Origin: Tetramitus jugosus
Taxonomy: Eukaryota; Protista; Heterolobosea
Assembly: GCA_937625935.1 (NCBI GenBank)
Contig: OW569359.1
Span: forward strand, 310,001-374,000
Reading direction: 5' to 3'
DNA length: 64,000 nucleotides
The notes under the pieces are model-generated. The model worked only from the letters and a program-made list of their open reading frames with translations, did not search any database and was not told where the DNA came from. The position numbers and the translations under genes are program-made. Of the stretch, positions 33,229 through 60,200 are shown one piece after another. The stretch's first letter is position 1, and each line of letters opens with the position of its first letter.

Positions 33229-33230
<2 letters not shown>

Positions 33231-33250
33231 ATTCTAATCTGCAGGTGGTG

Positions 33251-43600: not shown

Positions 43601-44030
43601 TCAGTATGTGTCATGTTTCCTTCATTAACTGTGTTGAGTCTGATGCGGATGGCCTTCTTCGCACTTGCAGCAGAGTAGAATCGTCGGGTTTACAAACTCC
43701 GATGTTCTGGCTGCCCACTCCCACGTTCTGAACTTTTTGTTCCTGGCTCTCTCCCCATGCGGCCTTCCGATCAACTACTCTCAGTGCAATCCATACCGAG
43801 TCCTTGGTTCTCCGTAGTGATAAAACACTTTGAAAGTTCTTTCAGTTGTCTCTCCCCTCACTAGATATCTCAACAACAGTTCTCTGGTGTTCAGTAACAC
43901 GAAGGCTGTTGTTGCCCCTGGTTTCTTTGCTCTTGCGACCAAAATTCTCTATCGACCTATTTCTTGATCAAGCTATTGGTGACATCACATTGCTCGTCAG
44001 GGTCACTCATTCTTTCAACTCGATGTTTTG
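40690..44030 (-). mobile_element. Stack of at least 3-4 degenerate L1-like copies upstream of tRNA-Tyr
   Basis: Fragmented ORF2 homology (GKRDTEERTLLLDTL; KKCPGPDGVHNEMLKL; TDIAKAFDSVPHNA); poly(A)/3' ends at ~41134, ~41245 and ~42178, each next to a copy of the target sequence agcatgttcctgacaag (44031-44047). Confidence 0.85.
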
Positions 44031-44087
44031 AGCATGTTCCTGACAAGGCCGAAAGCGAGGAGTAGACTCGGAATTATGGTCCATACT

Positions 44088-44160
44088 CCTCTGATAGCTC
44101 AGATGGTAGAGCATGAGACTGTAGATCTTGTGGTCGCGTGTTCGAGTCACGCTCGGAGGA
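44088..44160 (+). tRNA. tRNA-Tyr(GTA), intronless
   Basis: CCTCTGA/TCGGAGG acceptor with C1-G72 and A73, GCTC/GAGC D stem, CTGTAGA loop, GCGTG-TTCGAGT-CACGC, T-run terminator. Confidence 0.9.
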
Positions 44161-44274
44161 ACTTTTTAATTAATAAAAATTAATTAGCCAATTTCCTTGT
44201 TTTTGAAATTTTCCCTTGTCCCTTTTTTTTCGTGACACAAAAAATGTAAAATATAGTAAAAATAATAATAGGAA

Positions 44275-44558
44275 ATCCCCAAAGAGATCTTAGACTTCAC
44301 TAGACTGAACAAATATATTCTTGATGCTGCGTGTTGTCAAACCGTCATTCTCTCAAAGGAATTCACTGTTGTATTTGGATGATTTCCTTCTGTTCAGCAA
44401 TAGAATATTAAGCACAAAGGCTCCAAGACCAAGTATTGACGCTTGAGAGAAATGGCTTGCCGATCAATGCTTCCAAGTCGGTGTTAGTATCACAACAAGA
44501 GATCACATTCTGTGGTTACTTGTTGCATTTTGGAGAGAACAATGGTGTCTTCACAACG
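44275..44558 (+). mobile_element. Remnant (copy C) of the DIRS-like RT / GIY-YIG element
   Basis: Deleted, near-identical match to RT sequence at 56150-56635 (gagatcttagacttcac..., tatttggatgatttcc..., gcttgccgatcaatgcttccaagtcgg). Confidence 0.88.
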
Positions 44559-44559
44559 T

Positions 44560-44982
44560 TCTCTTGATAGCATTGTGGGGCACAGAGTCGAATGCTTTAG
44601 CAATCAGTTAGCAGTATGTAAAGATGTGAGTCGTTTCTGTTAGCGTGGTCGATAACTCCTTTCACTATTGACAGCTTCTAGTGAATGTCCCTGAACTTTC
44701 GACCACCTCCTTGAGTGTTCGTAAAAAGTGATGCAGCCTATTCTACTTTAGACACTCTCACATTCAACAATCTTGTAAACAACTTTGAGAGTGAGCTAAG
44801 AAGGCATATAGGCCTGTAGTTTTCCAGGTCCTGTGCACTTCCTTTCTTGTAAGCCGGAATGATATTCTTTCCTGGGAACACTCCGCTCACGAGTATATTA
44901 TTGAAAAGGAGCATAGCACTTCTGCAAATTCCATTGAAAATCTCTGTTCTCAGTGCTTGGCATCTTGATGTGCTCGCGTTTT
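44560..44982 (-). mobile_element. Internally deleted L1-like remnant retaining the 5' terminus
   Basis: IIPAYKKGSAQDLENYRPICLLSSLSKLFTRLLNVRVS; begins AAAAACGCGAGCACAT like the full-length copy; 5' junction about 43 nt before the tRNA-Trp stub. Confidence 0.8.
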
Positions 44983-45039
44983 TAAATAAACCGGGCGAGA
45001 ACGAATCCCTGATTTTCTGTGTACGGGGGGTTAGCTCAG
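44983..45039 (+). repeat. tRNA-Trp upstream flank + first 15 nt of the tRNA (stub 1)
   Basis: taaataaaccgggcgagaacgaatccctgattttctgtgtacGGGGGGTTAGCTCAG, nearly identical to 57072-57128. Confidence 0.92.
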
Positions 45040-48000
45040 GTTTATTACATCTCTCTTGGAGCATTGTACAAATGGTTGTTTGGTCAACGCGCTGGCGCGA
45101 ATTCAACCAACCTAACCGAGGGAATAAACTGTTGTTTTTTTTTTGGTGTTTGTCTTTTTTTGTTTTTTTTTTGTTAATGTAACATTTGAGACTCAATATA
45201 CTTGACAACATCAGCTCTTGTTCGATTCACAATCCATCCAGTTATTATTGTTGCTCCCATCTCGACTGATTCTACTGTGGTGTCATACAAAAGTAGACCC
45301 ACATTGTATGCATCTAGAGTGCAATGAGTGTGGAGACTACCTGAGATGTACCTTTCGAACCATGTACGAGGGCATTCAGCGGAGTAAAAAAACACCCGGT
45401 TGATACCAGGAACCGACAGAACAACTAAATGGGTGCGTTCCGGGAGGGGAAGAGTCAGGAATTACGCAGGAGGCCGGTGGACCCCAAACAACGCTCGTTA
45501 TTCAATGTGACTAGCCCCATAATAGAATTTTTTCTTTTTAAAGGGCAAATTTTATTATTTTACAATGGGAGGTCCACCCCCCTTCCGCCCGTTATTTAAA
45601 TGTTGTCTAACCCCAAAAAGTCCGTTATTAGTAATTCCTGACTCTTCCCGAGGGACACTTGTTGCACCATTGACAAAAAGAGAGAAGTATCTTGAGCGGA
45701 CTGGAAGCAATGCATTGGTGTCCAATTGCATCTTCAAACAACGTCCTACGCTTTCCAGGGCAACTTCACGACATATTGAATACTTCCCCGGCGATCAGTT
45801 CATGTCTGAGCCAACTGTGTATAAATCTCTCCCATTTACGACAGTTTCGCAATTCCATCACATCCAAATAAAGTTCCAATACTAACACCTTGCACCTTAG
45901 CTTCTTCAGTCTCTTATGAACATTTCTACTCTGTCCTATTTTTGAGCCGTTGCATTCATTTGATGAGAGCACCTATGTTCTTTAATTGTGGTGCACATTG
46001 ACTGTAATAAAACAGTGAATGTAATTAACATATGATTTAGCTCACCCTCAACACCCAAAGCATCCTTCAGGGTTTTGATATCGTTCACTGGTTTGGGCAA
46101 TTTAATTGTCTCTTTTCCATGACTAAAAATGGATTTAAGCCAAACAGAGTCAATTTCTGGAGGAAACAAAATGTTTTGGATTCTCTTGTCTTCCACGTCA
46201 CGTCCGAACCAATTTAGGGTAGCAATCGCCACTGCCTTATTGTTTATCATCAATATAACCTCATCTCCAGTCTCCAAGTGGTTTAAATAAATATGATTTG
46301 ATTTTTTTTCTTTATTGCTATTATTATTATTGTTATTATTATTGGTACCCGCTAGAGACATGTTTGCACCATCGGTAAGAGCGTGTTCAAGTCGCGACTT
46401 GCGTATCTTCATGGCGCTTGAAGTTTTGGAAAAAAATGGAATTGAAGTTACAAGCTTCATCGACATGAACGGTACTGGCGTCTCCAGAAGTACCACGAAT
46501 TCTGCAACCATATCAACCAATTGGTGGTCGGAAAATCACTCGGGAATGATGGAACATTTTTCCGAAAGTTTCTGCTTCAGTCTATGTTAAGTATTATCGA
46601 GAGAGATTGACGAATACCGAAGGGCTATTTGATGGAGTCATTGTTCAACAAGTAGTAAATTTGTGAACGATCAACTCTCTTTTTTGCACGTTTTGGAGTG
46701 ATGATTGGACTTCTAGAATCACAAATGTAATTACTGTTGTTAGTAAAAAAGTGTCGACATAAAGATCGTATAACTCTTGGTTCGTCATGGGTCGATCAAA
46801 GAGAAACTCGATTATGATGGTGGTGGTGAAAGTGGTGGTGGTGATGATAATCGAGTATTATTGTCACTGTTGGGATCTCGACTTTGTCTTGTTGTATGGC
46901 ATGGTATGGATTTGTAAATGGTGATGAGTGTGGTTGTTGTTGAAGAGGACAAGTTGTCGTTTGATATTATTTGATGTTTTTGTGTTTGTGTGAGTAAAGT
47001 GTTTGAGGAAAATGAAACATACCACAGCACCACACCAAATCGCCATAAATTTTCTTTTTTTCGGTTGTGTCAAAAAACAAAACAACCTCATTGAACAAAC
47101 AAAAGAAAAAAAATTTGTTATTATTGAGTTAACGTGGTAGTGTCTTGTTTTATTTTTTTGTTTTTATATCTTGTTGTTTGTGATGGATTGATGTCATGAT
47201 GGGTTGATGGGATCAACAGAAACAAAAAAACAAACAACAAGAAGTACTTCAACATGTCTAGCGGTCAGTGGCAGACTATAAGTTTTCATTTGCTGAGAGC
47301 ATTGAGTGCAAAGATGGTACAGAGTGCTTTGGGGAGCGTTGACGCCGGAGAGGTGAATGTGACGGTGAGAGAGTCTGAGAGTCATGGATCGAAGCACTTG
47401 TGTGGAGAAAAGATCTGGGGGGACAAGCGAAGAGCCACATAAAGGTACCGCTATAGATCAACCAATTAATGAAGAAAGGTCTGTGCTTACACAAAAAGGG
47501 AAGTGCGCATTGGTTCAACTGAACAGCGCAACACCTAGCACAAACCGTATCAAAGGAAATCAGTGTAGGGGGAAAAAGGGTCCAAAGGTGCTCTCCAAAC
47601 CATATTGGCAAGAACCTTCTGAGATTATCCAAGAGGGAATGACAATCAGGTTCTACAGCAATGAAGAAGAAGTACGCTCCAAGCTTCGTCATTTCATTTT
47701 GAATAAGATTAAGCCTGAGCACGGATGATAGAATCAAGGAGTATGTGGTCAGTGGTGTTCTAATTGAGATTCCAATGGAACAAGCATTGTTTATTGCTTC
47801 CATAGCAATGATTCCTCGTGAAGCAGATGCGACTCGCCCCAGAGAGATCTTGGACTTCACAAAACTGAACAAGTACATTCTTGATGCTGACTGTCGTTTG
47901 CCATCTAGGGGCGATCTGGTCTCGTTGGTGAACAATTACTCATTTGCGGCCTCTGTGGACATCAAGCCTTGCTACACCAACATCAAACTGCATCCAGACT

Positions 48001-48763
48001 ATCCAGCCTACTGTTGTATCAGCTGGAGAAAGAAGGTGTACAAGTTTACGAGTGTTCCCTTTGGAATCAAGTGCGCGCCGGCGTGTTGCCAAACTGTCAC
48101 ATCCTTTCTCTCAAAGGAATCCACTGTTGTTTATTTGGATGATTTCCTTCTGTTCAGCAATAGTGAAGAAGATTTAGCACAAAGGCTCCAAGACCAAGTA
48201 TTGACGCTTGAGAGAAATGGCTTGCCGATCAATGCTTCCAAGTCGGTGTTAGTACCACAACAAGAGATCACATTCTGTGGTTACTTGATGCGTTTTTGGA
48301 GAGAACAAGGGTGTCTTCACAACGGATAAGCACCTCAAAGACCTTTCGTTGTATGTCAAACTCTTGTCGACAAAGGAGAGTATTGACTTGATCACCTGGC
48401 GAAGTTTTGTTGGCAAATACAACTGGTGTCAGGAGGACGAGAGAGTCCATGCAAAGCTTGTTGCACTCATGAATGAGTGCGACAGCTCCACTAACCACAT
48501 TGTGCTCGATCATGTCGCCAGAGCCATGCTCGACAATATGGTCGCCCAATGTTCTCTTCCTTTTAACTATTGATTTTGTGTGGTAGGTGCTTGGTCAGTC
48601 AGGAACGAATTTGTCCTCGTCAATTCGGCTGCTCTAGACAGCTGTAAGTGACAAGGAAGTCAATGGGCCAATAGGGAGTGAGAACAAATTCGTTCTTGAG
48701 TGATGGAGCATCAACTGTTGCAAACAAAACAAAAAAAACAAAAAAAATTACGACTGTTTGTAA
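45040..48763 (+). mobile_element. Copy A of the DIRS-like RT / T5orf172 element (degenerate; right end displaced to 54493-54551 by L1 insertions)
   Basis: Colinear with 54552-57070; RT 47384-48573 with frameshifts; nuclease gene on minus strand broken by a MITE and small deletions; has ~1.07 kb (46021-47088) that copy B lacks. Confidence 0.88.
45447..45649. mobile_element. 203-bp MITE with 19-bp TIRs and 3-bp TSD (PIF/Harbinger-like)
   Basis: TIR GGGAAGAGTCAGGAATTAC / GTAATTCCTGACTCTTCCC, TSD GAG; empty site in copy B (ccgggagggacac at ~54954-54966). Confidence 0.92.
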
Positions 48764-49526
48764 TTTTTTTTTAATACAACAAATGGTGGAGTGGCAGGCC
48801 TACGCAACAGGATTCATTCTCTTCTTGGAATGTTGTTTTGATCCCTTCTTCAGGGATTCGTTGCGAGGGCCTCCACTACCATCTGGAGCACCACTGGTGA
48901 GGTCAGATGGCTCCGTAGTCCTAGCCAGTTGGTAGGACCTACGGAGAGCACCTGACTTGATACTGGCCAACCTGGCCGGGATCTTGTTGGCAGCAGTGTC
49001 ACCAACGGTGACACGTGCTGATCGCTTCTTGTGTTCGTTGAGTTGGGGACTCTGTAACTCACAGTCGGGGTTACTGAGATCCAACTCAACTGGATTTTCT
49101 TCGGTGGTTGTGCTTCTTGCACGGTCCATGATTGCTCGGGCAGCAATCTCTTTCTTGACTTTCTTGAACACCTCGGAGGTGTTCAATACTAGCTCGAGGA
49201 TTGCTCTGTTACGAGCATCCTCATCAATGGTGTTGTTGGTTGGCTCTTGGGTGACCGTAGTTGGAGTGGCGGGATGGGACTCCGGCATGATCGACTCCCA
49301 GTCATCGGTCGTAGACGGAGTCGAAGGTTCGAATTCAGAGATTCGCTCCGGCGTCCTTGGAGACGGGGATGCGAGGGGAATCCGGTTGACGGAAGCCATA
49401 TCTTTTAACACACTGACTTGGTGGCGCAGGTCGTCCACCACAGCCAGTAGCTCTTGGTACATCTTGGTCAGCCTCTTGCTGGCAGCCTTGACCGGATCAC
49501 GTGGGCGTGGAAGGCCTCTGCGTTTT
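48764..49526 (-). mobile_element. Short non-autonomous poly(A) retroelement with a 220-aa ORF (48800-49462)
   Basis: L1-type 5' end AAAACGC, 3' end GTTGTATT-(A)9, short TSD ttgtaa; ORF has a coiled-coil start and an S/T/P-rich body with no RT or APE motifs. Confidence 0.65.
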
Positions 49527-49638
49527 TTGTAAATAAACGGGGCTTTTTTTTTTTTTTTTTTTCCATACAACATTTGTTGCCACTTTATTCTATGCACTAC
49601 AGTGAGACGTGTTGTCGCTCAGAACCGCAGGTTCTGAG

Positions 49639-52600
49639 CTATTGTTCACCTCTCTTCGCTACTGAGTCTTTCCAGACTTTATATAACCGTTTGATGCAAG
49701 ACCTCTTCATTGCATTCACCAGCCTTTTAACCTTTGTTTTCCTCTTCTTGCGACCATACACAACCAGCTCCTTCATCAATACATCCTTCTGATCATCCTC
49801 TTTTCCCATTAACCCTGCTAGGATTTCTTCAGTGGTTCGACTTGGGCTTAGTGATACCAATTTCCCGTCATCGTAAACCACATCATCGAACCATATCTTT
49901 AGCTTGACTGGTCTCATAAACTCCAGCTTGTCCAATTTGGCTTTAAATTCCTCCACCAGTCCTTTCCTTACCCTTTTGGCTTCATCACATTCCACTAGTA
50001 AGTGGCTGATCGTCTCCGGCGCATTCGCACAGTGAGCACACACGACCTCCATCGACGGCTCATACAAGTCACGCAGCACAGTCTTTGTGTGGAGCGTACC
50101 ACTTCTAACTTGATGGTAAAACCACAATTCACTTCTTTCCAGGCCGAACGGACACTTTAGAAATTCATTCCACTCTTTTTCTTGTAGTTCAGCCTCCAAT
50201 CTCCATTCAGACTCTGATTCTATCGATTTTGTCCTCACCTGCACGAAGTGTTCCACGAGACCTTCTCTGACATTTGGGTTGCTCAATGCTTTGTCACCCA
50301 CCGACACTTCCAGAGTGTCATTCAGTGTTCGCTCCCTCCATCTCTTTTCATTACCCTTACCAAGAATTTCCAGGTAAGCCCTTATCCTTGAGTACCTTGC
50401 TGGGCCAATGCCCTTCAACTTGAACTTCATCTTTGCTTCCTCAAACGGGATAACCATTATCCCATCCTCATCGAAGAGTTGGGAGTTTTTGGAAATTCCA
50501 CTTTGAATGAGTAGTTTTGCGTCTCCCGTAGGGAGATGCCACCCAATACTGCATTTCTCACATTCATGATCTCCTTTGGGACCTACTTTAACCTTCGAGC
50601 CATGTAGAAGTTTGGCGCACCAAGACAGGTAAGAGTGTTTGGTCTCACGAAGACGATTGTTGGATTGAAATATGCTCGACCGAACGAGCGTTTGCGATTG
50701 CTTGACATCATCAAGCGTATCCAACAGAAGTGTCCGTGCTTCCGTGTCTCTCTTACCTTGCAGCATCTCCACGACAAAGGCAGAGATCTTAGCCGTCAGA
50801 CTCTCTTTGAATTCATTGAGTCCAATACCTCCTTTGTCCCTCTCCACTGACAGCAGCAAAGAGGGAAACCTTTTCATGGCACTCGATCCATGTTTCACTG
50901 CCTTGCGTCCAATACCCTCGATTTCGTTTAGCCATTTCTTTGGCCAATGGGTAAACTCTGAAGCAAACAAGAATACAGGATGGATACAGGTGTTCACTAT
51001 CCTCGCTGCCTGACTTGGTCCCAGTTTCAGCATCCTCAACCGATTCAGGATTCTCGATACCTTCTGCTTTGCTTGTTTCTTCTGGGCCTCTGTGTCCCCA
51101 TTGAGGTTTGTAAACAGCCCAAGTGCTCTAAAGCCCGTGTGTTTGTCCTTTGCAGTAATCACCTTATCAGCCACTCTGATCGTCACAGGAGCTTCACCCA
51201 CTTTTCTTGCAAAGAACTCCAGCTTGTCTGGGTGCATACTCAGACCAACCCACTTGAGCCCCCTGTACATATCATTAGCCGTCGACTGGATGTCCTGGAG
51301 ATCATCACTGAAAAGGTTACAGTCATCTACGTAAGCTACATTCCAGATTCTCTGGCTCATGGCTTGGTAGCCGCTTGCTCTTAGCTTTGCATACAGCAAC
51401 ACTAGCTGATGGACTATCACATAAGTCGTGGTGGACAATGAGTCCCCTTGCCTCGTGCCTCTGTTGATATCAATCGACCGGGATGTGTGTTGTGTACCGA
51501 CTGTTGCCACATTCGATTCCAACATGTTCCTGACGAGCGTGATGATACCCTCTGGGAAGTTGAAAAACCGGTAGGCAGCAGTGACGGCATTGTGTGGTAC
51601 ACTGTCGAATGCCTTCGAGATGTCGGTAAGCAGAAGATACAACTGCTTATCATTTCTATTTGCGTGATCGATCACTCCTCTAATGATGGACAGCTTTTCT
51701 CTGATGTCACGCATTTTACGACCCCCACCTTGTGTGTTGTTGAATACACACATTTTCTCAGCAGCAGCTGACACTCTTTGGTTAAGCAACCGAGTGAAAA
51801 CCTTTGATAGACCGCTGAGCAGGCATATAGGGCGAAAGTTCCCTATCATCATAGGGCAGCCCTTCTTGTACGCCGGAACTATAACACACCTCTTCCATTC
51901 ACACGGGAATTGCCCGGTCTCTAATATTCTATTGAAGAAAGTCATCAGCGCCTCTGCGAACTCAACTCTATAGTCTCTTTCCTTGGTGTGTCTCAATTTG
52001 AGCATTTCATTGAATATCTTGTCGACCCCCGGTGCCTTACCGTTTCGCAGCCACTTTAAGGATTGCAGCACCTCCTCCAACTTGAACGGGGGAAAAATAT
52101 CCTCCATACTCTCAGTTCTGCATCTCATCTCGTCTAGGAACGTCATGTCTGCAAATTCTTGTTCAAACACCTCCTCAAAGTAATCAGCAGCATGCTCAGC
52201 TACCTTTTCCGGGGCAGTGATCACCTTTTCTCCACTCTTGTAACTCTTGAATCTTAGCCTCAGTGCCTTCTTGCCTGTGGCAGCATTGAAGAAGAATCGG
52301 GGGTCCACGAATTCTGTGGTTCTGGCTTTGTACAACCACTTGGAAAACCTCTTGTTAGCCCTACGGGCTCTTTCAACTTGTACAAGCCCATCGACAATCT
52401 TCAGTGATGCCAAAATACCTCTCAGAGTACAGTCCTCCTTGTACGCCTTGCAAACCCTCATGAGTTTCGGTGAACCGGTGTCATGGGAAGACAGCCGCTC
52501 CACTAAAACCATTCTATCCTTCAGCCAAGGTTTTACTCTGCGGTTGTCAATTCCTCTCGCAATTGGTTTACACTTAGGAAACCTCTTTGCACTTTCCTTT

Positions 52601-53472
52601 AAGATCATAGTGATCCGGTCACATTGTTCATCAACATCCATTTCCGCCATGTTGATTTTATCTAGCTCCTCAACCACCTCTTTAGAGTACTCTATCCACA
52701 TCTTGCTGTCCCTCTTTGGGAACTTGGGCTTTTCTTCCGTGGGCCCTTGTGCCTCCACCTTTGTCCACCATACCTTTACCATCGTAGGTATGTGATCACT
52801 CCTTACCCCATTGGCTGTGTACTTTTCCACATCTCTAACAATGTCAGCGGCTGGTGAATTGCACCAGACTGAGTCGATGCGAGAAGAGAACTCGCCTCTA
52901 AAGAACGTGTGAAAATGGGGTGTGTCTGTAACCGTATTAACATCGCTCAATTGTAACCCTTCCACCATTGCCTTAAAATGGGCACTATTGTCATCTAACC
53001 TTCCAGAGGTCCGCTCAGTACTGTTTATCACTGTATTGTGATCCCCACCAAACAATAGTTTTCCCCTGCATGAGAGCACTCTCAATGCCTCATTGACCAT
53101 CACATAGTGATGTCCGCCTTCAGCTCTTTTGTGAGGTCCGTAATGATTGACCAGGGTGACTCGCAGGTCTCCGCTTGCCACCTCTACAGCCAACAATCTT
53201 TGGTTCGTCAACAGTGTTCTGTACTCTTGAATACTCTCTCTTCTTAATATCGTCATTATTCTGTCATCTGTGTTGGTGTGTATCAACATACACCCGGCAT
53301 ACTCCAGCTGCTTTTCAAAAGTCGCCTTGAACTTTTCGCTCTTGCAACTAGCCTCTTGCAGCATCAGAACATCAATCCTTGGGAGGATCGTCTCCATCAT
53401 GGCAACAACATCGTTTCGTTTCCCTCCTAACCCTCTGATGTTGTACCAAACGACATTGAGTGTCGTACTCAT
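49639..53472 (-). CDS. ORF2: APE endonuclease - reverse transcriptase - CCHC zinc finger
   Basis: WYNIRGL, LMLQE, NHYGP, GGDHN, SRIDSV, SDHIP (APE); KAPGVD, FRPICLL, DISKAFD, GTRQGDSLS, YVDD (RT); CAHC...HLLVEC. Confidence 0.96.
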   Translation of the reverse strand: MSTTLNVVWYNIRGLGGKRNDVVAMMETILPRIDVLMLQEASCKSEKFKATFEKQLEYAGCMLIHTNTDDRIMTILRRESIQEYRTLLTNQRLLAVEVASGDLRVTLVNHYGPHKRAEGGHHYVMVNEALRVLSCRGKLLFGGDHNTVINSTERTSGRLDDNSAHFKAMVEGLQLSDVNTVTDTPHFHTFFRGEFSSRIDSVWCNSPAADIVRDVEKYTANGVRSDHIPTMVKVWWTKVEAQGPTEEKPKFPKRDSKMWIEYSKEVVEELDKINMAEMDVDEQCDRITMILKESAKRFPKCKPIARGIDNRRVKPWLKDRMVLVERLSSHDTGSPKLMRVCKAYKEDCTLRGILASLKIVDGLVQVERARRANKRFSKWLYKARTTEFVDPRFFFNAATGKKALRLRFKSYKSGEKVITAPEKVAEHAADYFEEVFEQEFADMTFLDEMRCRTESMEDIFPPFKLEEVLQSLKWLRNGKAPGVDKIFNEMLKLRHTKERDYRVEFAEALMTFFNRILETGQFPCEWKRCVIVPAYKKGCPMMIGNFRPICLLSGLSKVFTRLLNQRVSAAAEKMCVFNNTQGGGRKMRDIREKLSIIRGVIDHANRNDKQLYLLLTDISKAFDSVPHNAVTAAYRFFNFPEGIITLVRNMLESNVATVGTQHTSRSIDINRGTRQGDSLSTTTYVIVHQLVLLYAKLRASGYQAMSQRIWNVAYVDDCNLFSDDLQDIQSTANDMYRGLKWVGLSMHPDKLEFFARKVGEAPVTIRVADKVITAKDKHTGFRALGLFTNLNGDTEAQKKQAKQKVSRILNRLRMLKLGPSQAARIVNTCIHPVFLFASEFTHWPKKWLNEIEGIGRKAVKHGSSAMKRFPSLLLSVERDKGGIGLNEFKESLTAKISAFVVEMLQGKRDTEARTLLLDTLDDVKQSQTLVRSSIFQSNNRLRETKHSYLSWCAKLLHGSKVKVGPKGDHECEKCSIGWHLPTGDAKLLIQSGISKNSQLFDEDGIMVIPFEEAKMKFKLKGIGPARYSRIRAYLEILGKGNEKRWRERTLNDTLEVSVGDKALSNPNVREGLVEHFVQVRTKSIESESEWRLEAELQEKEWNEFLKCPFGLERSELWFYHQVRSGTLHTKTVLRDLYEPSMEVVCAHCANAPETISHLLVECDEAKRVRKGLVEEFKAKLDKLEFMRPVKLKIWFDDVVYDDGKLVSLSPSRTTEEILAGLMGKEDDQKDVLMKELVVYGRKKRKTKVKRLVNAMKRSCIKRLYKVWKDSVAKRGEQ

Positions 53473-54479
53473 AGCTCACTATGTCCGTGCTCTTGTGGTG
53501 GAACCACACTCTCTTGAGTACTGTTCACTCGAATAGTTCCATTAGGGGAATTAGTCATAATTATCTTCCTTTGTACCTCTTCATCGTCGACTTCCCTAGC
53601 ATCTCGCTTCTTTCCTCTGTTGTTTACAAAATCATCCATTCTCCTCTGACCTTTATCAATCATTAGTTTCCCTCTGTTTTTTATCTGGGCTACTGGTGTG
53701 CTCACCGGATCATCCTCCATCGTTTGCACTGCATTTTGTGGTTCCTCCAGTGTGTCCCTAGGTGTAGTTACTTTCTCTTGTATGGTGCTTTTGTTCGCTC
53801 CATCCAGCTTACTCACCCGAAGTCTCATCTTCATCATTTCCGACTTAAGAAATCGAATTTCTTCCACACTCCTCCTGTAATCATCTAGCATCTTGTTCAT
53901 GTCTCTTTGAAGCTGAGCTACACTTCTCTTCAATAAATCCATTGGTTCGAGTGTTTTGTGAACAAATTTCCTAGTCTTGGTGTTGCCCATGGGTGGCTTT
54001 TCGAGAAGTGCATTCACATAACTAGGGCCTTTGGTGGATACAATGGCTGAGTTCCCTCTTAATTCCACTCTTTGCACGTTATCCCGACCAGCCCAAGTTT
54101 CAATATCTTCCTTGATGATCTTCCCAGCTCCGGAAATTACTACGTCATGTGTCGCTCTCATTCTTCCATTGACACTTGCAGTGGAATCCTTCAACACTTT
54201 TGTGCAGTTGAACCACTGAATGAATTCCCAAACTTTGTCATCTCTGACAATTATCCACGCCTTGTAGCTTTCACCTCTCCTAACTACTTGTACCCTCTCT
54301 ACCCACTCCGAGCAGCCTGCAACTAGTTTGTTTGCTATTGCTTCTGGAGTTACATTGCTGCACCTCCCAGTGACGACTACTTCATCTCTCTTCGTAGCTG
54401 CTTCTTTGCTCATCTTTGTCCATACAACATATTGACTTCTGCGGATCATTACCGCCTGTACTGACGGTCCTTGTGACAT
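53469..54479 (-). CDS. ORF1: putative RNA-binding protein (two RRM-like folds + coiled coil)
   Basis: Directly upstream of ORF2 with an ATGA stop/start overlap; beta-alpha patterns EVVVTG...VERVQVV...KAWIIV and DVVISG...VQRVELRGNSAIVS; heptads LLKRSVAQLQRDMNKML. Confidence 0.75.
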   Translation of the reverse strand: MSQGPSVQAVMIRRSQYVVWTKMSKEAATKRDEVVVTGRCSNVTPEAIANKLVAGCSEWVERVQVVRRGESYKAWIIVRDDKVWEFIQWFNCTKVLKDSTASVNGRMRATHDVVISGAGKIIKEDIETWAGRDNVQRVELRGNSAIVSTKGPSYVNALLEKPPMGNTKTRKFVHKTLEPMDLLKRSVAQLQRDMNKMLDDYRRSVEEIRFLKSEMMKMRLRVSKLDGANKSTIQEKVTTPRDTLEEPQNAVQTMEDDPVSTPVAQIKNRGKLMIDKGQRRMDDFVNNRGKKRDAREVDDEEVQRKIIMTNSPNGTIRVNSTQESVVPPQEHGHSEL

Positions 54480-54492
54480 GTGTTCGCGTTTT

Positions 54493-54551
54493 TTGTAAAT
54501 AAACGGGGCGAGAACGAACCCCTACCTTTCTGTGTCCGGGGGGTTAGCTCA
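54493..54551 (+). repeat. tRNA-Trp upstream flank + first 14 nt of the tRNA (stub 2)
   Basis: ttgtaaataaacggggcgagaacgaacccctacctttctgtgtccGGGGGGTTAGCTCA. Confidence 0.92.
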
Positions 54552-54681
54552 TGTTTATTGTATCTCTCTTGGAGCATTGTACAAATGGTTGTTTGGTCAA
54601 CGCGCTGGCGCGAATTCAACCTGGATAAACTGTTTTTGGGTTTTTTTTTTTTTGGTGTTTGTTTTTTTTTTTTTTTTTTTG

Positions 54682-55383
54682 TTAATGTAACATTTGAGAC
54701 TCAATATACTTGACAACATCAGCTCTTGTTCGATTCACAATCCACCCAGTTATTATTGTTGCTCCCATCTCCTCGACTACTGATTCTACTGTGGTGTCAT
54801 ACACAAGTAGACCCACATTGTATGCATCTAGAGTGCAATGAGTGTGGAGACTACCTGAGATGTACCTTTCGAACCATGTTCGAGGGCATTCAGCGGAGTA
54901 CAATAACACCCGGTTGATCCCAGGAACCGACAGAACAACTAAATGGGTGCGTTCCGGGAGGGACACTTGTTGCACACCATTGACAAAAAGAGAGAAGTAC
55001 CTTGAGCGGACTGGAAGCAATGCATTGGTGTCCAATTGCATCTTCAAACAACGTCCTACGCTTTCCAGGGCAACTTCACGACATATGTTGAATACTTCCC
55101 CGGCGATCAGTTCATGTCTGAGCCAACTGTGTATAAATCTCTCCCATTTACGACAGTTTCGCAATTCCATCACATCCAAATAAAGTTCCAATACTAACAC
55201 CTTGCACCTTAGCTTCTTCAGTCTCTTATGAACATTTCTGCTCTGTCCTATTTTTGAGCCGTTACATTCATTTGATGAGAGCACATAAATGCACTCCCCT
55301 ATGTTCTTTAATTGTGCATAATTTGCCACCTTACCATTGACTGTAATAAAACACTGAATCATTGAACAAACAAAAGAAAACAA
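54682..55383 (-). CDS. T5orf172/MUG113-type GIY-YIG nuclease domain protein (N-terminal exon deleted in this copy)
   Basis: CIYVLS...KIGQSRNVHKRLKKL...WERFIHSWL...GEVF fits the T5orf172 pattern IY..KIG.S.N..RL..L..E..IH..L..GE.F. Confidence 0.78.
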   Translation of the reverse strand: MFSFVCSMIQCFITVNGKVANYAQLKNIGECIYVLSSNECNGSKIGQSRNVHKRLKKLRCKVLVLELYLDVMELRNCRKWERFIHSWLRHELIAGEVFNICREVALESVGRCLKMQLDTNALLPVRSRYFSLFVNGVQQVSLPERTHLVVLSVPGINRVLLYSAECPRTWFERYISGSLHTHCTLDAYNVGLLVYDTTVESVVEEMGATIITGWIVNRTRADVVKYIESQMLH

Positions 55384-55544
55384 ATAGTTATTATTGAGTT
55401 AACGTGGTAGTGTCTTGTTTTATTTTTTTGTTTTTATAGCTTGTTGTTTGTGATGGATTGATGTCATGATGGGTCGAGGTTCAGTGTATCTATATAGGTT
55501 GAGGATCAACAGAAACAAAAACAAACAACAAGAAGTACTTCAAC

Positions 55545-56892
55545 ATGTCTAAAGGTCAGTGGCAGACTATAAGTTTTCATTTGCTGAGAGCATTGAGTGC
55601 AATGATGGAAGTACAGAGTGCTTTGGGGAGCGTTGACGCCGGAGAGGTGAATGTTGGCTCCGATATGACGGTGAGAGAGTGTCTGAGAGTCATGGATCGA
55701 AGCACTTGTGTGGAGAAAAGATCTGGGGAGACAAGCGAAGAGCCACATAAAGGTACCGCTACTATGGATCAACCAATTAATGAAGAAAGGTCTGTGCTTG
55801 CACAAAAAGGGAAATGCGCATTGGTTCAACTGAACAGCGCAACACCTAGCACAAACCGTGTCAAAGGAAATCAGCGTAGGGGGAAAAAGGGTCCAAAGGT
55901 GCTCTACAAACCATATTGGCAAGAACCTTCTGAGATTATCCAAGAGGGAATGACAATCAGGTTCTACAGCAATGAAGAAGAAGTACGCTCCAAGCTTCGT
56001 CATTTCATTTTGAATAAGATTAAGCCTGAGCACGGATGATAGAATCAAGGAGTATGTGGTCAGTGGTGTTCTAATTGAGATTCCAATGGAACAAGCATTG
56101 TTTATTGCTTCCATAGCAATGATTCCTCGTGAAGCAGATGCGACTCGCCCCAGAGAGATCTTGGACTTCACAAAACTGAACAAGTACATTCTTGATGCTG
56201 ACTGTCGTTTGCCATCTAGGGGCGATCTGGTCTCGTTGGTGAACAATTACTCCTTTGCGGCCTCTGTGGACATCAAATCTTGCTACACCAACATCAAACT
56301 GCATCCAGACTATCAAACCTACTGTTGTATCAGCTGGAGAAAGAAGGTGTACAAGTTCACGCGTGTTCCCTTTGGAATCAAGTGTGCGCCGGCGTGTTGC
56401 CAAACTGTCACATCCTTTCTCTCAAAGGAATCCACTGTTGTTTATTTGGATGATTTCCTTCTGTTCAGCAATAGTGAAGAAGATCTAGCACAAAGGCTCC
56501 AAGACCAAGTATTGACGCTTGAGAGAAATGGATTGCCGATCAATGCTTCCAAGTCGGTGTTAGTACCACAACAAGAGATCGCATTCTGTGGTTACTTGTT
56601 GCGCTTTGGAGAGAACAAGGGTGTCTTCACAACGGATAAGCACCTCAAAGACCTTTCGTTGTATGTCAAGCTCTTGTCGACAAAGGAGAGCATTGACTTG
56701 ATCACCTGGCGAAGTTTTGTTGGCAAGTACAACTGGTGTCGAGCCAGACAAGAGGACGAGAGAGTCCATGCAAAGCTTGTTGCACTCATGAATGAGTGCG
56801 ACAGCTCCACTAACCACATTGTGCTCGATCATGTCGCCAGAGCCATGCTCGACAATATGGTCGCACAATGTTCTCTTCCTTTTAACTATTGA
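55545..56892 (+). CDS. DIRS-like reverse transcriptase split over two frames (55545-56039 and 56014-56892), no RNase H
   Basis: W..SEIIQEGMTIRF; then GVLIEI, REILDFTKLNKYI, SVDIKSCY, YKFTRVPFGIKCAP, VYLDDFL, INASKSVLVPQQEIAFCG, RSFVGKYNW, stop ~45 aa later. Confidence 0.85.
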
Positions 56893-57113
56893 TTTTGTGT
56901 GGTAGGTGCTTGGTCAGTCAAGAACGAATTTGTCCTCGTCAATGCGGCTGCTCTTGACAGCTGTAAGTGACAAGGAAGTCAATGGGCCAAGAGGGAGTGA
57001 GAACAAATTCGTTCTTGAGTGATGGAGCATCAACTGTTGCAAAACAAAACAAAAAAAATTACGACTGGTTGTAAATAAACCGGGCGAGAACGAATCCCTG
57101 ATTTTCTGTGTCC

Positions 57114-57185
57114 GGGGGGTTAGCTCAGCGGTAGAGCATCTGACTCCAGATCAGCAGGTCGGGCGTTCAATTCGCTCACTCCTCA
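57114..57185 (+). tRNA. tRNA-Trp(CCA)
   Basis: GGGGGGT/ACTCCTC acceptor (two G-U pairs), GCTC/GAGC, CTGA-CTCCAGA-TCAG, GGGCG-TTCAATT-CGCTC, TTTTT at ~57195. Confidence 0.92.
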
Positions 57186-57268
57186 AGAAGAATATTTTTC
57201 ATTCTTTTTGACTGCTTCCTCACAAAACGTTTCAAATTTTTAACAGATCGCACCTGTGGTTGGATAGT

Positions 57269-60200
57269 ATGATTCATCGTCCAATAAGGGCTCAGAGTTT
57301 AGTTTTTATCGAACCTGAATTGTACCATGACTCTGTTCGTTCTCCTTCCCACTCAGACGATGAAGATGACACTGAAGTGACCAGTTTGATAATAAAACGA
57401 CTCTCAACTCATTTAGAAGCTCTAAAAATTGAAATAATGAAGCGTTTAGGGCTGTTCATTAGTGAAGAAGAGCTACTAGAGTTGAAGGATATGAACACAA
57501 TCGAGAGAGACCAGTCTCTAGTAACAAGTATGTTTCTTCTCGATGATGAAATCAAATTACTGCTTAAATATTGGAAAGAAGAAGTCGTTTTGAGAGTCAA
57601 GAGTGGAATGATAAGGAAGGAAGATCAAGAATCATACCTTCAACAACAATTCATGTCGAGCGATACATCCGAGATGGAAAAACAGATTGCCCTCTTGACC
57701 CAAAGTATCAAAGTATGATGTTTGATTGTTGTGAGTGTGCAGTAGCAACCATAGTACTCAATACGCCCTAACTTTGCTCCCTTGTTCGATCATTATGATA
57801 ATAGGATCAAGAACAACTGACGAACAAACAATCAACAGACATAATGCTTCTGTCCTCTTTGATCAATAGACGAGAACAAATGTTGGATATCCAGCGAAAA
57901 CAATATTTACAGGAAGTAATGCTCCTTGAGAGTGAGAAGAAAAGAAATACAAATGTAAATCCGATTCCATCCAAGAAACCGCCCGCACAATCAGATTTGC
58001 ATAACATGATACACTGTCTCCATCAGAGTTTGGTTCAGAAAATGAAAGACGTAGGAATACTAGTGAACAGATTGAGGGTTGTTTCGAATGACATAGATCT
58101 TAACTTTAATAGTAACCTATCACCTAGGAAGAAAAAGAACTGGGAGAATGAAATTGAGAGTATTGAACGAGAATCCGAGAACCTTGCGACTCTACCTGTA
58201 CGATGCAAGGAATGTGAACAATTCAAGGAGATAATAGAGTCACTTCGAAGAGAACTATCGAACGAGAGGTTGATTGGAAAACTACGATTCGAGAATGTTC
58301 AGCAACAAAAACTATTGAACAAAACTCAGGAGAAAAGAGTTCAAGATGAAGATGAAGAAGAGAAAGTTAGAAGACGAGATCAAAGTGCTCTTGTATTCAA
58401 GTTGCAGGAGAGAATATCTAGAATGTCAGCGATTATTAATGCGAAAAACAACGAACTTGATGAGAAAGGGAAAGAAATTGACAACTTAAATCAAAAAAAT
58501 AAGAAGCTGCAGAGCAGAGTCCGTATTCTGACAACCGATCTCCAGAAAACCACACAAGATCGAGATCATGAAAAAAGCAAGTTCGAGGATTCAATGGTAT
58601 CTTATCATCGATTGTTAATGATGAAGGAGGATCTTCTATCGAGACTTGTACTCGCACAGAGGGACATTGACACAATAATAGTGGAGAAAGAGAGACTCGA
58701 ATCAGAAAGAGAACCAAAGAATGACGTTAGAGAAATGTTTTCTCAAACAGATTCCACAGTTGAAATGTTGAGAACGATACACAAAGAGAGTCAAGTGGAT
58801 TTTATTACAAGGAATGAAGTGCATGACTCAGAAACACAAACGAGTATCATTAACATTGAAGAGCTAGAGTATCTTTCTACCTCAAGAGTATCAAAGAACT
58901 CAATCGACGATATTATTCATCTACCAAATTCTAATCTCCCATTACCACTAACCTCTCCAAAAAGGTCCAACCACAGTACACATCTATTTCCGCCTTCCAA
59001 CGATCCCAATAATTCAAACCCCATTTCCGAACTGGATTTCAAACATGAAACTGAATCTCAACAAAGGAAGAAGGTTAAGAAGCCCAAACATAGTCCGATA
59101 ATATCCCTCACCGAGCAGCTTCTGAAGTTCAAACCAGAGGAAAATGATTGTGTTACTAGTTTAGAGAGATGTAAGACGCATGATCGAAAGTTTGAAGAGT
59201 CAATTATGTGTTCAGATATGTGTAATCTAGACTCAATAGAGAATGAATCTCTCTCAACAAGAGAGAGTACGAAAAGTGAATGGAATCAACCCATAGAAAA
59301 AATCAAAGAGGATTGCACCGAAGTTGAGAATGAAGAAACTTTAATCAATGATAAATATGTAGACAGTGAGACAACAGTCAGTACTCCCAGAAAGAAAACT
59401 CTTGATGGACTTAAGTCAACAATTGTTGTTCAAGATATTAACATTCCTAAGGGAAACATGGGAATTGAAGAAGCACGAAATATCTTTTCGCTTAAGAACA
59501 ACGCGAAGATCATTCAAGAAGAACCAGTAATCCCAGAAGATGTTAAGATCAATTCAGTGCAATATCAAGGGATGAGTCAGCCTCGGAAACGCCTCACCAT
59601 GATAGACGACACTAGCGGCGAAGAAAAAACAGACCAGCTACTTCTCGCGTCTGATACTGATTCTTTCTCAGATGAGAGTGATGACATCGAGTTGGTAGGG
59701 CATGGTGTACCTACTTCAGCTCTTATGGTAACGAGTGAGAAGCATTTCTATCAATTAACGGAACAAAAAGAAGCCACTCAATCTGAAACGAACTGCTCTC
59801 ATCTGGAAGAGACAACAAAGAATGAAAAATATATGGCTATCGAAGATGATAAGAAAATGTTAAAATCATTCGTGGGAGAAGATCGGTTGACAAGTACCCC
59901 TTTTTCCGTTTCGATTCGTCGTAAGAAAGAAAGTAAGGCATCCCGCAACAAAATGGAGAAGTTAATATCTCATGTTGTTGATATCAGGAATGGGTTGAGA
60001 GAGCTCAACAATGTGAAACAGGAAGCGAGAGATGTTTTTTCTAAAACAGAAGGATTCAATCATGAGAACCAGCATAGAACTGAAGAAGATGTCAAGTTGC
60101 TCTTTGAGAAAGAACTCCAAACACTCGAGAAAATAGAAGCTAGGACTCGACAAATGTATCAAAAGATTGCCTATCGGAAAAGAAAGCTGATTCAAGAACA

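Follow-up and report, generated by a model that had tools for sequence, protein, structure and literature searches.

What occupies a tRNA-Trp gene that breaks off twice after 14-15 nt and is complete only behind the last of several related sequence units? This arrangement is found in a 64,000-nt stretch of the Tetramitus jugosus genome (contig OW569359.1, positions 310,001 to 374,000; hereafter the window), and a preliminary description made from the sequence alone attributed it to a retroelement that enters the tRNA gene and rebuilds it. The best reading of the present analysis is that these units are probably copies of a new site-specific retroelement.

Element copies and tRNA-Trp sequences in the window

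Repeat analysis and BLAST identified three head-to-tail copies (C, A and B) of an element of ~2.5 kb, all on the same strand, in agreement with the preliminary description (Table 1). Copy A, previously treated as a plain copy, is a copy but a composite one: it consists of the copy B sequence plus two foreign inserts (45449-45649 and 46021-47087) and is parted from its tail by a LINE. The remnant of copy C aligns with positions about 2798-3285 of copy A. A block of 59-60 nt that comprises 45 nt followed by GGGGGGTTAGCTCA(G) is present at 44980-45039, 54493-54551 and 57069-57128, and the third block alone continues into a complete tRNA-Trp, as originally noticed. In the 26-Mb genome, GGGGGGTTAGCTCA occurs nine times, namely in seven tRNA-Trp genes and in the two stubs of the window (the reversed-pattern control gave 0 matches in the same genome). 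The repeated 45-nt sequence had been taken for a flank, but it is the element's own 3' tail: it is kept at all three element-occupied tRNA-Trp loci and missing from the four unoccupied ones, where similarity ends exactly at base 1 of the gene.

Table 1. Coordinates of the element copies, tRNA-Trp sequences and LINEs within the window
Feature	Position	Strand	Remarks
Copy C remnant	44277..44558	+	Internal RT fragment, Trp-family; BLAST 85-91% to A and B
LINE fragment	44559..44979	-	5'-truncated, diverged subfamily; tblastn/blastn, repeat family; not part of the element
45-nt 3' tail of copy C	44980..45024	+	Begins TTTTAAATAAAC; contains AATAAA signal
tRNA-Trp stub 1	45025..45039	+	Gene nt 1-15
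Copy A body	45040..48763	+	Degenerate; nuclease ORF broken
Full-length non-LTR retrotransposon (LINE)	48764..54492	-	TRE5-like; separates copy A from its own tail; not part of the element
45-nt 3' tail of copy A	54493..54537	+	
tRNA-Trp stub 2	54538..54552	+	14 nt identical; 15th base G>T
Copy B body	54552/54553..57068	+	Base form of the element; 5' end GTTTATT
T5orf172/GIY-YIG-like nuclease ORF of B	54682..55383	-	233 aa, intact; antisense to RT
RT gene of B	55545..56892	+	Two frames: 55545-56039, 56056-56892
45-nt 3' tail of copy B	57069..57113	+	Abuts base 1 of tRNA
Complete tRNA-Trp(CCA) gene	57114..57185	+	ARAGORN; Rfam 61 bits

The full LINE encodes an ORF1 of 336 aa and an ORF2 of 1277 aa (APE+RT+zf), has a T9 tail on the plus strand and a TSD of about 6 nt (TTGTAA), with its 5' end 46 nt upstream of stub 2. 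The LINE fragment, which corresponds to ORF2 aa 510-630 and shows 62% aa and about 70% nt identity to the full LINE, is located at the same offset (-46) from stub 1; this is the offset from live tRNA genes typical of the LINE type in the window. Units C and A each contain one LINE, from different subfamilies, and unit B contains none. Because LINEs at -46 target live tRNA genes, each rebuilt tRNA was active before the next copy arrived, and the sequences argue for sequential insertion of C, A and B rather than a single event. Plain segmental duplication, the alternative raised in the preliminary description, is disfavored by these two different LINE insertions at -46. The junctions between the A end and the LINE and between the C remnant and the LINE fragment were found in short-read contigs of runs X1-X3, which may derive from the sample used for the assembly.

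A divergent pair of nuclease and reverse transcriptase genes

The element carries two outward-facing genes, a T5orf172/GIY-YIG gene of 230-250 aa on one strand and an RT-only gene of ~410 aa on the other, each ending at an AATAAA signal near its own element end. Both ORFs are under purifying selection, with pN far below pS and dN/dS of about 0.1-0.4. The proposed identity of the nuclease, a divergent T5orf172-type GIY-YIG protein, is upheld by Pfam (PF10544, 1.1e-7 in copy B) and by structure search; only the strand had to be corrected, to antisense relative to the RT. The residues R, E, GE-F and N are invariant in the family alignment, and the top of the structure search is filled by GIY-YIG nucleases (HIGLE, Z 6.0; Slx1, 5.1; UvrC, 4.6; I-TevI, 4.4; EndoII, 4.1). 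These structural matches are modest (Z 6 or below), which counts against the best reading.

The RT domain of copy B (RVT_1, 1.7e-19 in Pfam) is interrupted by one frameshift when compared with the intact RTs (410-436 aa) of sister copies, and the YLDD and remaining RT motifs are invariant across the element family. The RT is indeed related to DIRS and ends before any RNase H. Its nearest relatives outside the family are DIRS-type RT-RNaseH-Dam-like methyltransferase proteins of 600-720 aa, and the phylogeny places the family RTs in a clade of their own apart from this cluster (SH-aLRT 94, quick tree). Target-primed synthesis is not known from the LTR/DIRS-like class to which this RT belongs, and the class, together with the missing RNase H, counts against the best reading.

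The pairing of T5orf172 (-) with RVT_1 (+) is found in copy B, in copies at tRNA-Lys genes, and in the environmental contigs L045/L060/L067 (51% RT identity) and L062 (32%). In agreement with the absences originally listed, searches of the element revealed neither a recombinase nor an integrase, LTR or poly(A); ribozymes (hammerhead included), long terminal repeats and internal complementary regions were likewise not found. In six-frame searches of the whole genome, there was no match to Phage_integrase (Pfam), and the RT search yielded only family copies of the ~2.5-kb format, none of them longer with YR or RNase H.

tRNA gene targets across the genome

A tRNA gene is close by at all RT-bearing loci fetched from the genome (15/15); full copies adjoin it with nucleotide precision, and remnants lie within about 0.4 kb. 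The tRNA targeting proposed from the window recurs at many separate loci and in further organisms, and each subfamily is tied to one tRNA gene type. The Trp subfamily occupies three of the seven tRNA-Trp genes, a sister lineage in antisense orientation is present at at least seven tRNA-Lys(CTT) genes, and remnants are located at Lys(TTT) (two), Thr (two) and Ala genes. In L045/L060/L067, the target is tRNA-Asn, after which the two-gene layout is placed; the L045 copy is flanked by a perfect 24-nt direct repeat identical to the last 24 nt of tRNA-Asn. Stub length is 14-15 nt in the Trp subfamily, and the Lys lineage has an 11-12-nt tRNA-Lys stub at every 5' junction, including two leftmost junctions that non-element DNA precedes. 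Head-to-tail arrays with precise tail-stub-leader junctions are found in the window and at loci C30, C15 and C23, and copies nest into each other at locus C14.

Between C15 and C40, both at tRNA-Lys(CTT), identity is 92-100% in the nuclease gene and in the final 150 nt, whereas RT identity is just 28-80%; the nuclease gene and tail, not the RT, track the target tRNA. About 100% identity is also seen between the copies at C15 and C30, although the flanks of the two loci differ; judging from these sequences, the element has been mobile recently. Over its last 10-18 nt, the Lys tail looks like the trailer that tRNA-Lys genes without an element naturally have, a likeness that fits an element-borne homology segment as well as a TSD.

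Insertion mechanism and relation to known elements

We favor an autonomous, site-specific retroelement of ~2.5 kb for which the nuclease probably makes a staggered cut that is filled in, rebuilding the tRNA gene; the RNA intermediate, the cutting agent and cut position, and the priming of cDNA are the parts that we infer. Each subfamily would recognize its tRNA gene type, presumably through the nuclease protein, and a cut staggered by 12-24 bp would open the DNA at the very 5' end (Trp) or 3' end (Lys, Asn) of this gene. The copy made by reverse transcription would then be joined into the cut, and fill-in would duplicate the terminal tRNA segment, leaving a short stub on one side and a complete tRNA gene on the other. 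What the surviving gene loses would be replaced by the element ends, which supply a 45-nt upstream flank (Trp) or a TTTT terminator (Lys, Asn). The rebuilt gene would remain a target, so that repeated hits would produce head-to-tail arrays such as C-A-B. Since the two genes diverge from the central region, a central promoter would yield RNAs each missing half of the element, and full-length RNA would accordingly need a 5' promoter or a tandem or circular template. This counts against the favored reading, as does the result that a search for 5'-truncated copies carrying a stub of their own gave none.

Possible, although we consider it rather unlikely, is an att-like integration of extrachromosomal cDNA. 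Off-chromosome reverse transcription has been proposed for DIRS elements, to which this RT is related, and it would yield linear or circular DNA holding the tail-stub-leader junction, in which 12-30 nt match the tRNA gene edge exactly. The nuclease would break the tRNA gene and the cDNA would be joined via homology or by a trans-acting recombinase; the direct repeats would be duplicated attachment cores rather than fill-in TSDs, and the arrays concatemers or products of repeated integration. The precise junctions in the arrays fit this scheme, as do the divergent genes with outward poly(A) signals, from which unit-length RNA is most easily obtained on a tandem or circular template, the Lys tail, which extends target homology past the stub, and the lack of 5'-truncated insertions with stubs in the search. 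However, the element lacks a recombinase, the genome a Phage_integrase match, and the copies the complementary regions and long terminal repeats; furthermore, the Trp tail is unlike the upstream flanks that tRNA-Trp genes naturally have, and 12-24 nt of homology is short for recombination.

Local amplification of one insertion by unequal crossing-over or replication slippage, first between the 15-nt stub and the first 15 nt of the tRNA and later between element copies, is doubtful. Stub-to-tRNA exchange predicts the same junctions as re-insertion, and identity within loci (A-B, 97.3%; A-C, 95.8%; the two C14 copies, 98.9%) exceeds that between loci (about 91%), so that local duplication or gene conversion may help to build arrays. 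Nevertheless, duplication of a LINE-bearing unit cannot give different LINEs in C and A and none in B, each LINE marks a stage at which the present stub was still a complete tRNA, and more than 12 separate occupied tRNA loci would be left unexplained even if amplification held for the window.

Still less probable is a DNA-level cassette, that is, a homing-type or cut-and-paste element with short inverted termini moved by the GIY-YIG nuclease, with the RT as cargo or serving elsewhere, for instance in defence or repair. Free-standing selfish genes of the T5orf172 type are common in viruses and mobile DNA (PMC12220804), the flanking direct repeats resemble transposon TSDs, and all three families have inverted termini of 7-11 nt (GTTTATT ... 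AATAAAC). These termini, however, coincide with the two outward AATAAA signals (the 3' one 10-38 nt inside the element end) and are better explained as poly(A) signals. Moreover, the RT catalytic motifs are all kept under purifying selection, the RT-nuclease linkage is held from 32% to 100% RT identity, the duplication varies (12, 15, 24 nt) in contrast to fixed transposase TSDs, and homing requires long flanking homology whereas the flanks differ between loci. A deletion derivative trans-mobilised by a full-length DIRS element with RNase H and tyrosine recombinase, suggested by the nearest RT relatives, is largely refuted and very improbable given the exclusively short family copies, the lack of a Phage_integrase match, the separate RT clade, the same two-gene unit conserved in other organisms, and the target duplication and tRNA gene choice, neither of which is known for DIRS elements.

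The favored retroelement shares its RT class with DIRS-1, Ngaro and PAT, and a tendency of copies to cluster with DIRS-like elements, but is devoid of RNase H, methyltransferase, tyrosine recombinase, inverted or split terminal repeats and an internal complementary region, and has instead a 12-24-nt flanking duplication, tRNA gene specificity and a GIY-YIG-type nuclease gene. EN+ Penelope-like elements (PLEs) likewise combine an RT with a GIY-YIG nuclease in the absence of LTRs and integrase, and PLEs are often arranged head-to-tail or in partial tandem, with presumed nuclease-initiated insertion and variable TSDs; their RT, however, is telomerase-like, their nuclease is fused into the RT ORF and does not belong to the T5orf172 subfamily, unlike the separate antisense gene here, and the present element gave no hammerhead ribozyme hit. 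Dada DNA transposons reportedly occupy a fixed position within tRNA or snRNA genes or directly at them, preserve one working copy of the gene and are bound, family by family, to one RNA gene type, all as seen here, but they use a DDE transposase, TIRs and short fixed TSDs and have no RT. Bacterial integrative islands and phages that enter tRNA genes also carry or regenerate the displaced tRNA end, keeping the gene whole between direct repeats of tRNA sequence, but these are DNA elements of another domain of life, with tyrosine or serine integrases and no RT.

The preliminary interpretation is supported, and its sequence-level claims appear to have held up throughout; the insertion itself may proceed by nicking and priming or by way of a circular or homology-guided cDNA. 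We found no paper describing this element, and the pairing of a DIRS-like RT with a separate GIY-YIG-type nuclease is apparently undescribed until now. For tRNA-targeting retrotransposons, tRNA genes are safe havens in a compact genome (PMC5006619), a use that the element shares with TRE5, TRE3, DGLT-A, Skipper-2 and Ty3. These are guided by the Pol III machinery and integrate 15-100 bp away from tRNA genes of any type, and the window LINEs behave like TRE5; the element, in contrast, has a fixed insertion nucleotide within the edge of the gene for a single tRNA species, part of that gene being duplicated. With 12-24 bases duplicated at insertion, the whole tRNA gene survives each landing.

Element copies at tRNA-Trp and the limits of the element

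Three copies of the element (A, B and C) are arranged head to tail on the same strand at tRNA-Trp (Table). A block of 59-60 nt, in which 45 nt precede the initial 14-15 nt of tRNA-Trp, starts at positions 44980, 54493 and 57069; the first two blocks run directly into the next element copy (GTTTATT...), and in the third the tRNA-Trp sequence continues to the end of the gene. The initial 14-mer of tRNA-Trp occurs at 9 sites in the 26.35-Mb genome, namely in 7 tRNA-Trp genes and in the two stubs of the window, that is, the short tRNA-gene segments left at the 5' junctions of the element. Repeat finding, BLAST and this 14-mer count agree with the preliminary description, according to which two of the three tandem copies are followed by a truncated tRNA-Trp and the last one by a complete gene. 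A few of the junctions were recovered in short contigs assembled from four sequencing runs. All copies in the window are damaged: C is a remnant, B carries a frameshift in the reverse transcriptase (RT), and A, which is disrupted, corresponds to B with two unrelated inserts (A positions 410-610 and 982-2048) that have their best matches on other contigs.

Table. Features of the window (C4 and C24 are other contigs of the same genome)
Feature	Position	Strand	Evidence or remark
LINE copy or fragment (APE and RT)	31628-33386		at tRNA genes
LINE copy or fragment (APE and RT)	40751-41036		at tRNA genes
LINE copy or fragment (APE and RT)	42690-43770		at tRNA genes
tRNA-Tyr	44087-44162		ARAGORN and Rfam
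Copy C, remnant	44277-44558	same as A and B	repeat finding and BLAST
5'-truncated LINE of another subfamily	44559-44979	minus	between C and its tail; ORF2 residues 510-630, 62% identity
Copy A, long	45040-48763	same as B and C	repeat finding and BLAST
Insert in A	45449-45649		200-bp piece, 96% identical to C24:416621-416774
Asn-run ORF	45936-46520	minus	mostly inside the larger insert in A; last ~85 nt are element sequence
Insert in A	46021-47087		1.07-kb piece, block matches of 94-97% to C4:682.5-684.3 kb
Full-length non-LTR retrotransposon	48764-54492	minus	between the body of A and its 45-nt tail
Copy B, shorter, ~2.5 kb, base form	54552-57068	same as A and C	repeat finding and BLAST
tRNA-Trp(CCA), complete	57114-57185		ARAGORN and Rfam

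The repeated sequence of ~45 bp was originally taken for a flank; the repeat is indeed present, but it is the element's own end. When the 45 nt were searched together with the tRNA, they were found at 3 of the 7 tRNA-Trp genes (in the window and on contigs C28 and C14), which are exactly those that carry the element, and in the remaining four the similarity does not extend upstream beyond base 1 or -1. Because, in addition, the tail of the sister lineage at tRNA-Lys opens with the same TTGTAAATAAA motif as the Trp-lineage tail, the element can be delimited as extending from GTTTATT to the base preceding the tRNA. Read on the other strand, the conserved 5' terminus GTTTATT gives the AATAAAC of the nuclease gene described below. 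Apart from these AATAAA-type inverted termini of only 7-11 nt, the element contains no long direct terminal repeats, no split or inverted repeats and no internal complementary region, and the flanking duplication is 12-24 nt. The predicted hairpins in the tail differ from copy to copy. No hammerhead ribozyme was detected, the Rfam E-value scan of 43900-57400 yielding only the two tRNAs, and there is no poly(A) tail on the element; the neighboring LINE has an A-tail.

Coding capacity and affinities of the reverse transcriptase

On the minus strand of copy B lies an ORF of 233 aa with matches to Pfam T5orf172 (1.1e-7) and MUG113, and the plus strand encodes the RT (RVT_1, 1.7e-19), broken by a single frameshift. 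Both ORFs are intact in sister copies, with RTs of 410-436 aa and nucleases of ~240 aa. A central spacer lies between the two genes, which point away from each other and terminate at AATAAA, each near its own end of the element. The nuclease, of the T5orf172 subfamily, is a separate gene on the strand opposite to the RT and not a fusion with it. Matches to PF10544 were obtained in four lineages (1e-7 to 3e-5, all above the curated cut-off), and in the alignment the IY...KIG...R...E...GE-F...N pattern is kept, with R47, E74, G88-E89-F91 and N113 invariant. The AlphaFold (AF2) model of the nuclease has a pLDDT of 80, with block means mostly of 86-94 in the N-terminal domain. A Foldseek search of the PDB with this model gave no match, and GIY-YIG folds emerged only from the exhaustive VIA-align search, in which the best matches, with modest Z scores, were HIGLE (6.0), Slx1 (5.1 and 4.8), UvrC (4.6), I-TevI (4.4) and T4 EndoII (4.1). 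Pfam, the invariant residues and the structure search are thus in line with the divergent T5orf172-type GIY-YIG ORF recognized previously, and the protein can be assigned, as a predicted nuclease, to the T5orf172 branch of the GIY-YIG superfamily. The C-terminal domain of ~120 aa may bind DNA, by analogy with GIY-YIG homing endonucleases.

Across lineages, pairwise Nei-Gojobori comparison of both ORFs gave pN of 0.03-0.36, pS of 0.17-0.88 and dN/dS of ~0.1-0.4, and the RT retains YLDD along with a set of family-specific invariant motifs. Judging by pN well below pS and by the motifs kept, both genes appear to be functional.

With a length of 410 aa, the RT protein extends no further than a helical thumb-like region and has RVT_1 as its only Pfam domain, just as the earlier reading of an RT that stops before any RNase H implied. 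No RNase H, methyltransferase, integrase (rve), protease (RVP) or gag domain was detected in the element with Pfam; it contains neither a tyrosine recombinase nor an APE or RLE endonuclease, the T5orf172 gene being the only ORF besides the RT, which is not of the LINE type. The reported lack of a tyrosine recombinase, integrase, LTR and poly(A) accordingly stands, none of these having been detected. The six-frame genome search with the RT matched copies of this family only, none of them a longer copy with a tyrosine recombinase or RNase H, and the six-frame whole-genome search with PF00589 (Phage_integrase), a profile that could miss divergent eukaryotic tyrosine recombinases, was without a match.

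By both sequence and fold, the closest RTs of solved structure are those of foamy virus, CaMV, Ty3 and HIV; the RT model is of low confidence (pLDDT 58.6), and its fold matches were used for the broad RT class alone. The ESM Atlas search with the RT returned generic RT clusters only. The consensus of the nearest RT neighbors outside the family is of the RT-RNase H type and includes TDAS..GWG and AD..SR, motifs that we take to be typical of the DIRS RNase H, and 9 of the 66 nearest non-family neighbors contain a Dam-like methyltransferase domain, as in the DIRS pol architecture. In a quick, unrooted maximum likelihood tree, which was built with unlabelled database neighbors and no named DIRS, Ngaro, VIPER, PLE or Ty3 references, the family forms one clade (SH-aLRT 94) outside the RT-RNase H-methyltransferase cluster. 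Taken together, the DIRS-like neighbors, the relatives of solved structure and the separate clade suggest that the RT is best described as probably DIRS-related and devoid of RNase H; membership in DIRS itself fails on every other defining feature.

Relatives of the RT are very few among 5.8 billion proteins, with six matches below 1e-30 in the exhaustive search followed by a broad cloud at ~1e-20. A 409-aa homologue (P0007; 40% identity) with a Cys-rich N-terminal extension is encoded at 890-2119 of a JGI metagenome contig (L055), which is eukaryotic and where it adjoins an IML1/DEPDC5-like gene. No tRNA and no recognizable T5orf172 gene were detected on this contig (a partial upstream ORF lacks nuclease similarity), and its RT may be a domesticated or differently organized relative. 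The closest non-family clades consist of short RTs (321 aa) or of RTs of 607 aa (P0013 on contigs L057-L059 and P0024 on L056). The ORFs on either side of them are on the same strand and have no Pfam match, and these RTs appear to represent uncharacterized retroelement types near the DIRS cloud.

The family and its tRNA targets

A tRNA gene is close to each of the 15 RT-bearing loci examined in this genome; full copies adjoin it with nucleotide precision, and remnants lie within ~0.4 kb. The Trp lineage, 86-94% identical to copy A, is found at tRNA-Trp in the window (contig C16) and on C28 and C14, and a lineage ~69% identical is found at tRNA-Lys(CTT) on C15, C30, C23, C40, C35, C37 and C8. 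The search with the Lys tail plus tRNA-Lys gave seven full matches, including C8:418650, which is known from this search alone; the tail on C37 is degraded. Diverged remnants are present at tRNA-Lys(TTT) on C18 and C7, and also near tRNA-Thr and tRNA-Ala. The Thr and Ala loci were considered as precise junctions and rejected, since they contain only degenerate RT remnants and the same repeats flank both Thr loci.

The Lys lineage is antisense to the tRNA, with the tail directly adjoining the 3' end of a complete tRNA-Lys gene. In each 5' junction of this lineage, the last bases of the tRNA recur in reverse complement as a stub of 11-12 nt; upstream of the stub in two leftmost junctions lies non-element DNA with an apparent original trailer and a T-run. 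As to the question whether every copy lies between a 14-15-nt stub and a complete tRNA, the tRNA association held, but a stub of 14-15 nt is specific to Trp. In 13 element-free tRNA-Lys(CTT) genes, 10-18 nt of the 3' trailer are shared with the end of the element tail; this likeness could be either a feature kept in the tRNA-Lys gene family or one captured or left by the element.

The copies on C15 and C30 are ~100% identical and their far flanks differ, a pattern that indicates recent mobility; given such intact, near-identical sister copies, the family appears to have been recently active. No 5'-truncated insertion with its own stub was found within the loci examined. Two rearranged copies were noticed. 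In the otherwise intact Lys copy on C40 (L036, ~7050-7225), the first ~170 nt (the leader and 9 nt of the stub) are inverted. In a Trp copy at C14:165990-170063 (L032/L039), a fragment of the same lineage (98.9% identical), which is truncated at both ends and lies in the opposite orientation, breaks the sequence near position 2850, with ~27 nt duplicated at the breakpoints; here one element has entered another, distant from any tRNA.

Two of the Lys copies are mosaics. The nuclease genes of the C15 and C40 copies, both at Lys(CTT), are 92-97% identical and the last 150 nt are 99-100% identical, with RTs only 28-80% identical and the C15 RT nearer to that of the Trp copy than to that of C40. 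Target choice thus seems to follow the nuclease and the tail, and the mosaics suggest that it resides in a swappable module formed by these two parts. If so, the small size of the whole unit (2.5 kb, ~640 codons) would make the family attractive for the development of site-specific insertion tools.

The same organization is found beyond T. jugosus. The closest RT (51% identity, 410 aa) is encoded on a 3-kb soil metagenome contig along with the same divergent T5orf172 gene. This contig begins within tRNA-Asn, the element starts right after the last base of the gene, and its 3' end is followed by a perfect copy of the last 24 nt of tRNA-Asn and then by unrelated DNA with a T-run. A second environmental contig shows a complete tRNA-Asn at the gene/element junction, and a third, from another assembly and with a different upstream flank, contains another Asn-associated copy. 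The divergent layout of the nuclease and RT genes is kept even on a contig where RT identity is just 32%.

Insertion and relation to known retroelements

The direct repeats measure 24 nt in Asn, 14-15 nt in Trp and 11-12 nt in Lys. All of them are located at the very end of the gene, and hence one complete tRNA is always left. The end of the element that abuts the complete gene provides a new upstream flank in the case of Trp; a TTTT run lies 6 nt beyond the gene in Lys, and a T9 run ~20 nt beyond it in Asn. We favor a nuclease-initiated insertion as the mechanism that might best account for these junctions. The lineage-specific GIY-YIG protein would make staggered cuts, 12-24 bp apart, at the edge of the tRNA gene, the RT would provide element cDNA, and gap fill-in would produce the duplication of the tRNA segment.

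Several observations weigh against nuclease-initiated insertion. With the two genes diverging, it is difficult to see how a full-length RNA would arise, unless from an internal 5' promoter or by transcription across a tandem or circular copy; we know of no target-primed synthesis by RTs of the DIRS/LTR class; insertions that are 5'-truncated and have their own stub are lacking at the loci examined; and natural tRNA-Lys trailers are similar to the end of the Lys tail. Because of these weak points, the main rival is a DIRS-style extrachromosomal cDNA that carries a short tRNA-identical attachment segment and is joined at a nuclease-made break. Fill-in and cDNA attachment differ in the predicted positions of the nicks and in whether the duplicated bases come from the target or from the donor.

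The LINEs in the window, which are separate from the element, bear on the history of the array. The full-length LINE encodes intact ORF1 (336 aa) and ORF2 (1277 aa, with APE, RT and a zinc-knuckle) and has a T9 run (T9/A9 tail) at its 3' junction and a target site duplication of ~6 nt. Both this LINE and the 5'-truncated one have their 5' ends 46 nt upstream of a stub and facing it, as do the clustered LINEs with respect to the tRNA genes at which they reside (~46 nt), and LINE and gene likewise face each other head to head at the occupied tRNA-Trp loci on C28 and C14. TRE5-type elements of amoebae are located upstream of tRNA genes with the 5' end toward the gene (PMC5006619), and the 46-nt offset, judged on position and orientation, fits the TRE5-like range of ~44-50 bp. 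Given that such LINEs target live tRNA genes, two different LINEs at -46 of the stubs suggest a sequential order of insertion, namely C, LINE, A, LINE and B, in which each rebuilt tRNA would have been a working Pol III gene between events. Simple duplication of one unit is argued against by the two LINEs belonging to different subfamilies; the copies are more alike within loci than between them, which fits gene conversion but also re-insertion next door.

Retrotransposon orders are defined by an RT lineage together with an integration enzyme, such as integrase in LTR elements, tyrosine recombinase in DIRS, APE or RLE in LINEs and GIY-YIG in Penelope-like elements, and the present family falls outside each of these. 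Penelope-like elements share with it the pairing of an RT with a GIY-YIG enzyme but have a PLE/telomerase-like RT, a fused nuclease and a hammerhead ribozyme, none of which is found here. DIRS elements are probably related in RT ancestry and differ in everything else: RNase H/methyltransferase, tyrosine recombinase, inverted or split repeats and no target duplication. The element also lacks the LINE-type RT, APE/RLE and poly(A) or simple-repeat 3' end of LINEs, and the LTRs, gag, protease and integrase of LTR retrotransposons (Ty3/gypsy and others). Dada transposons and bacterial tRNA-integrating islands reach the same outcome, with one RNA gene type per family and preservation of the gene. 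The element belongs to none of Dada, the bacterial islands, Penelope and DIRS.

The family is real and well supported, and the restoration of the tRNA proposed in the preliminary description holds; movement as a retroelement is probable. It is apparently undescribed: a full-text literature search, with subscription journals and Repbase outside its scope, yielded no description of such an element, and a survey of tRNA-targeting retrotransposons in social amoebae, which used known element types as queries only, lists nothing like it (PMC5006619).

The union of an LTR/DIRS-class RT with a nuclease of the T5orf172 type, which to our knowledge has not previously been tied to retroelements, is thus a second, independent RT/GIY-YIG combination. 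We consider it an even call whether the family represents a new order of eukaryotic retrotransposons, characterized by a DIRS-related RNase-H-less RT, a stand-alone sequence-specific T5orf172 homing-type nuclease, exchangeable nuclease and tail modules for retargeting, and termini that give the gene back its promoter-proximal flank or its Pol III terminator. If it does, it would provide a natural, compact and modular system for scarless safe-harbor insertion. Other elements use the Pol III machinery as a guide and settle next to tRNA genes. Entering the edge of the gene for one tRNA species and rebuilding that gene is a new way to gain a safe haven in a compact genome, in which a retroelement has arrived at the strategy known from Dada and bacterial tRNA-integrating islands.
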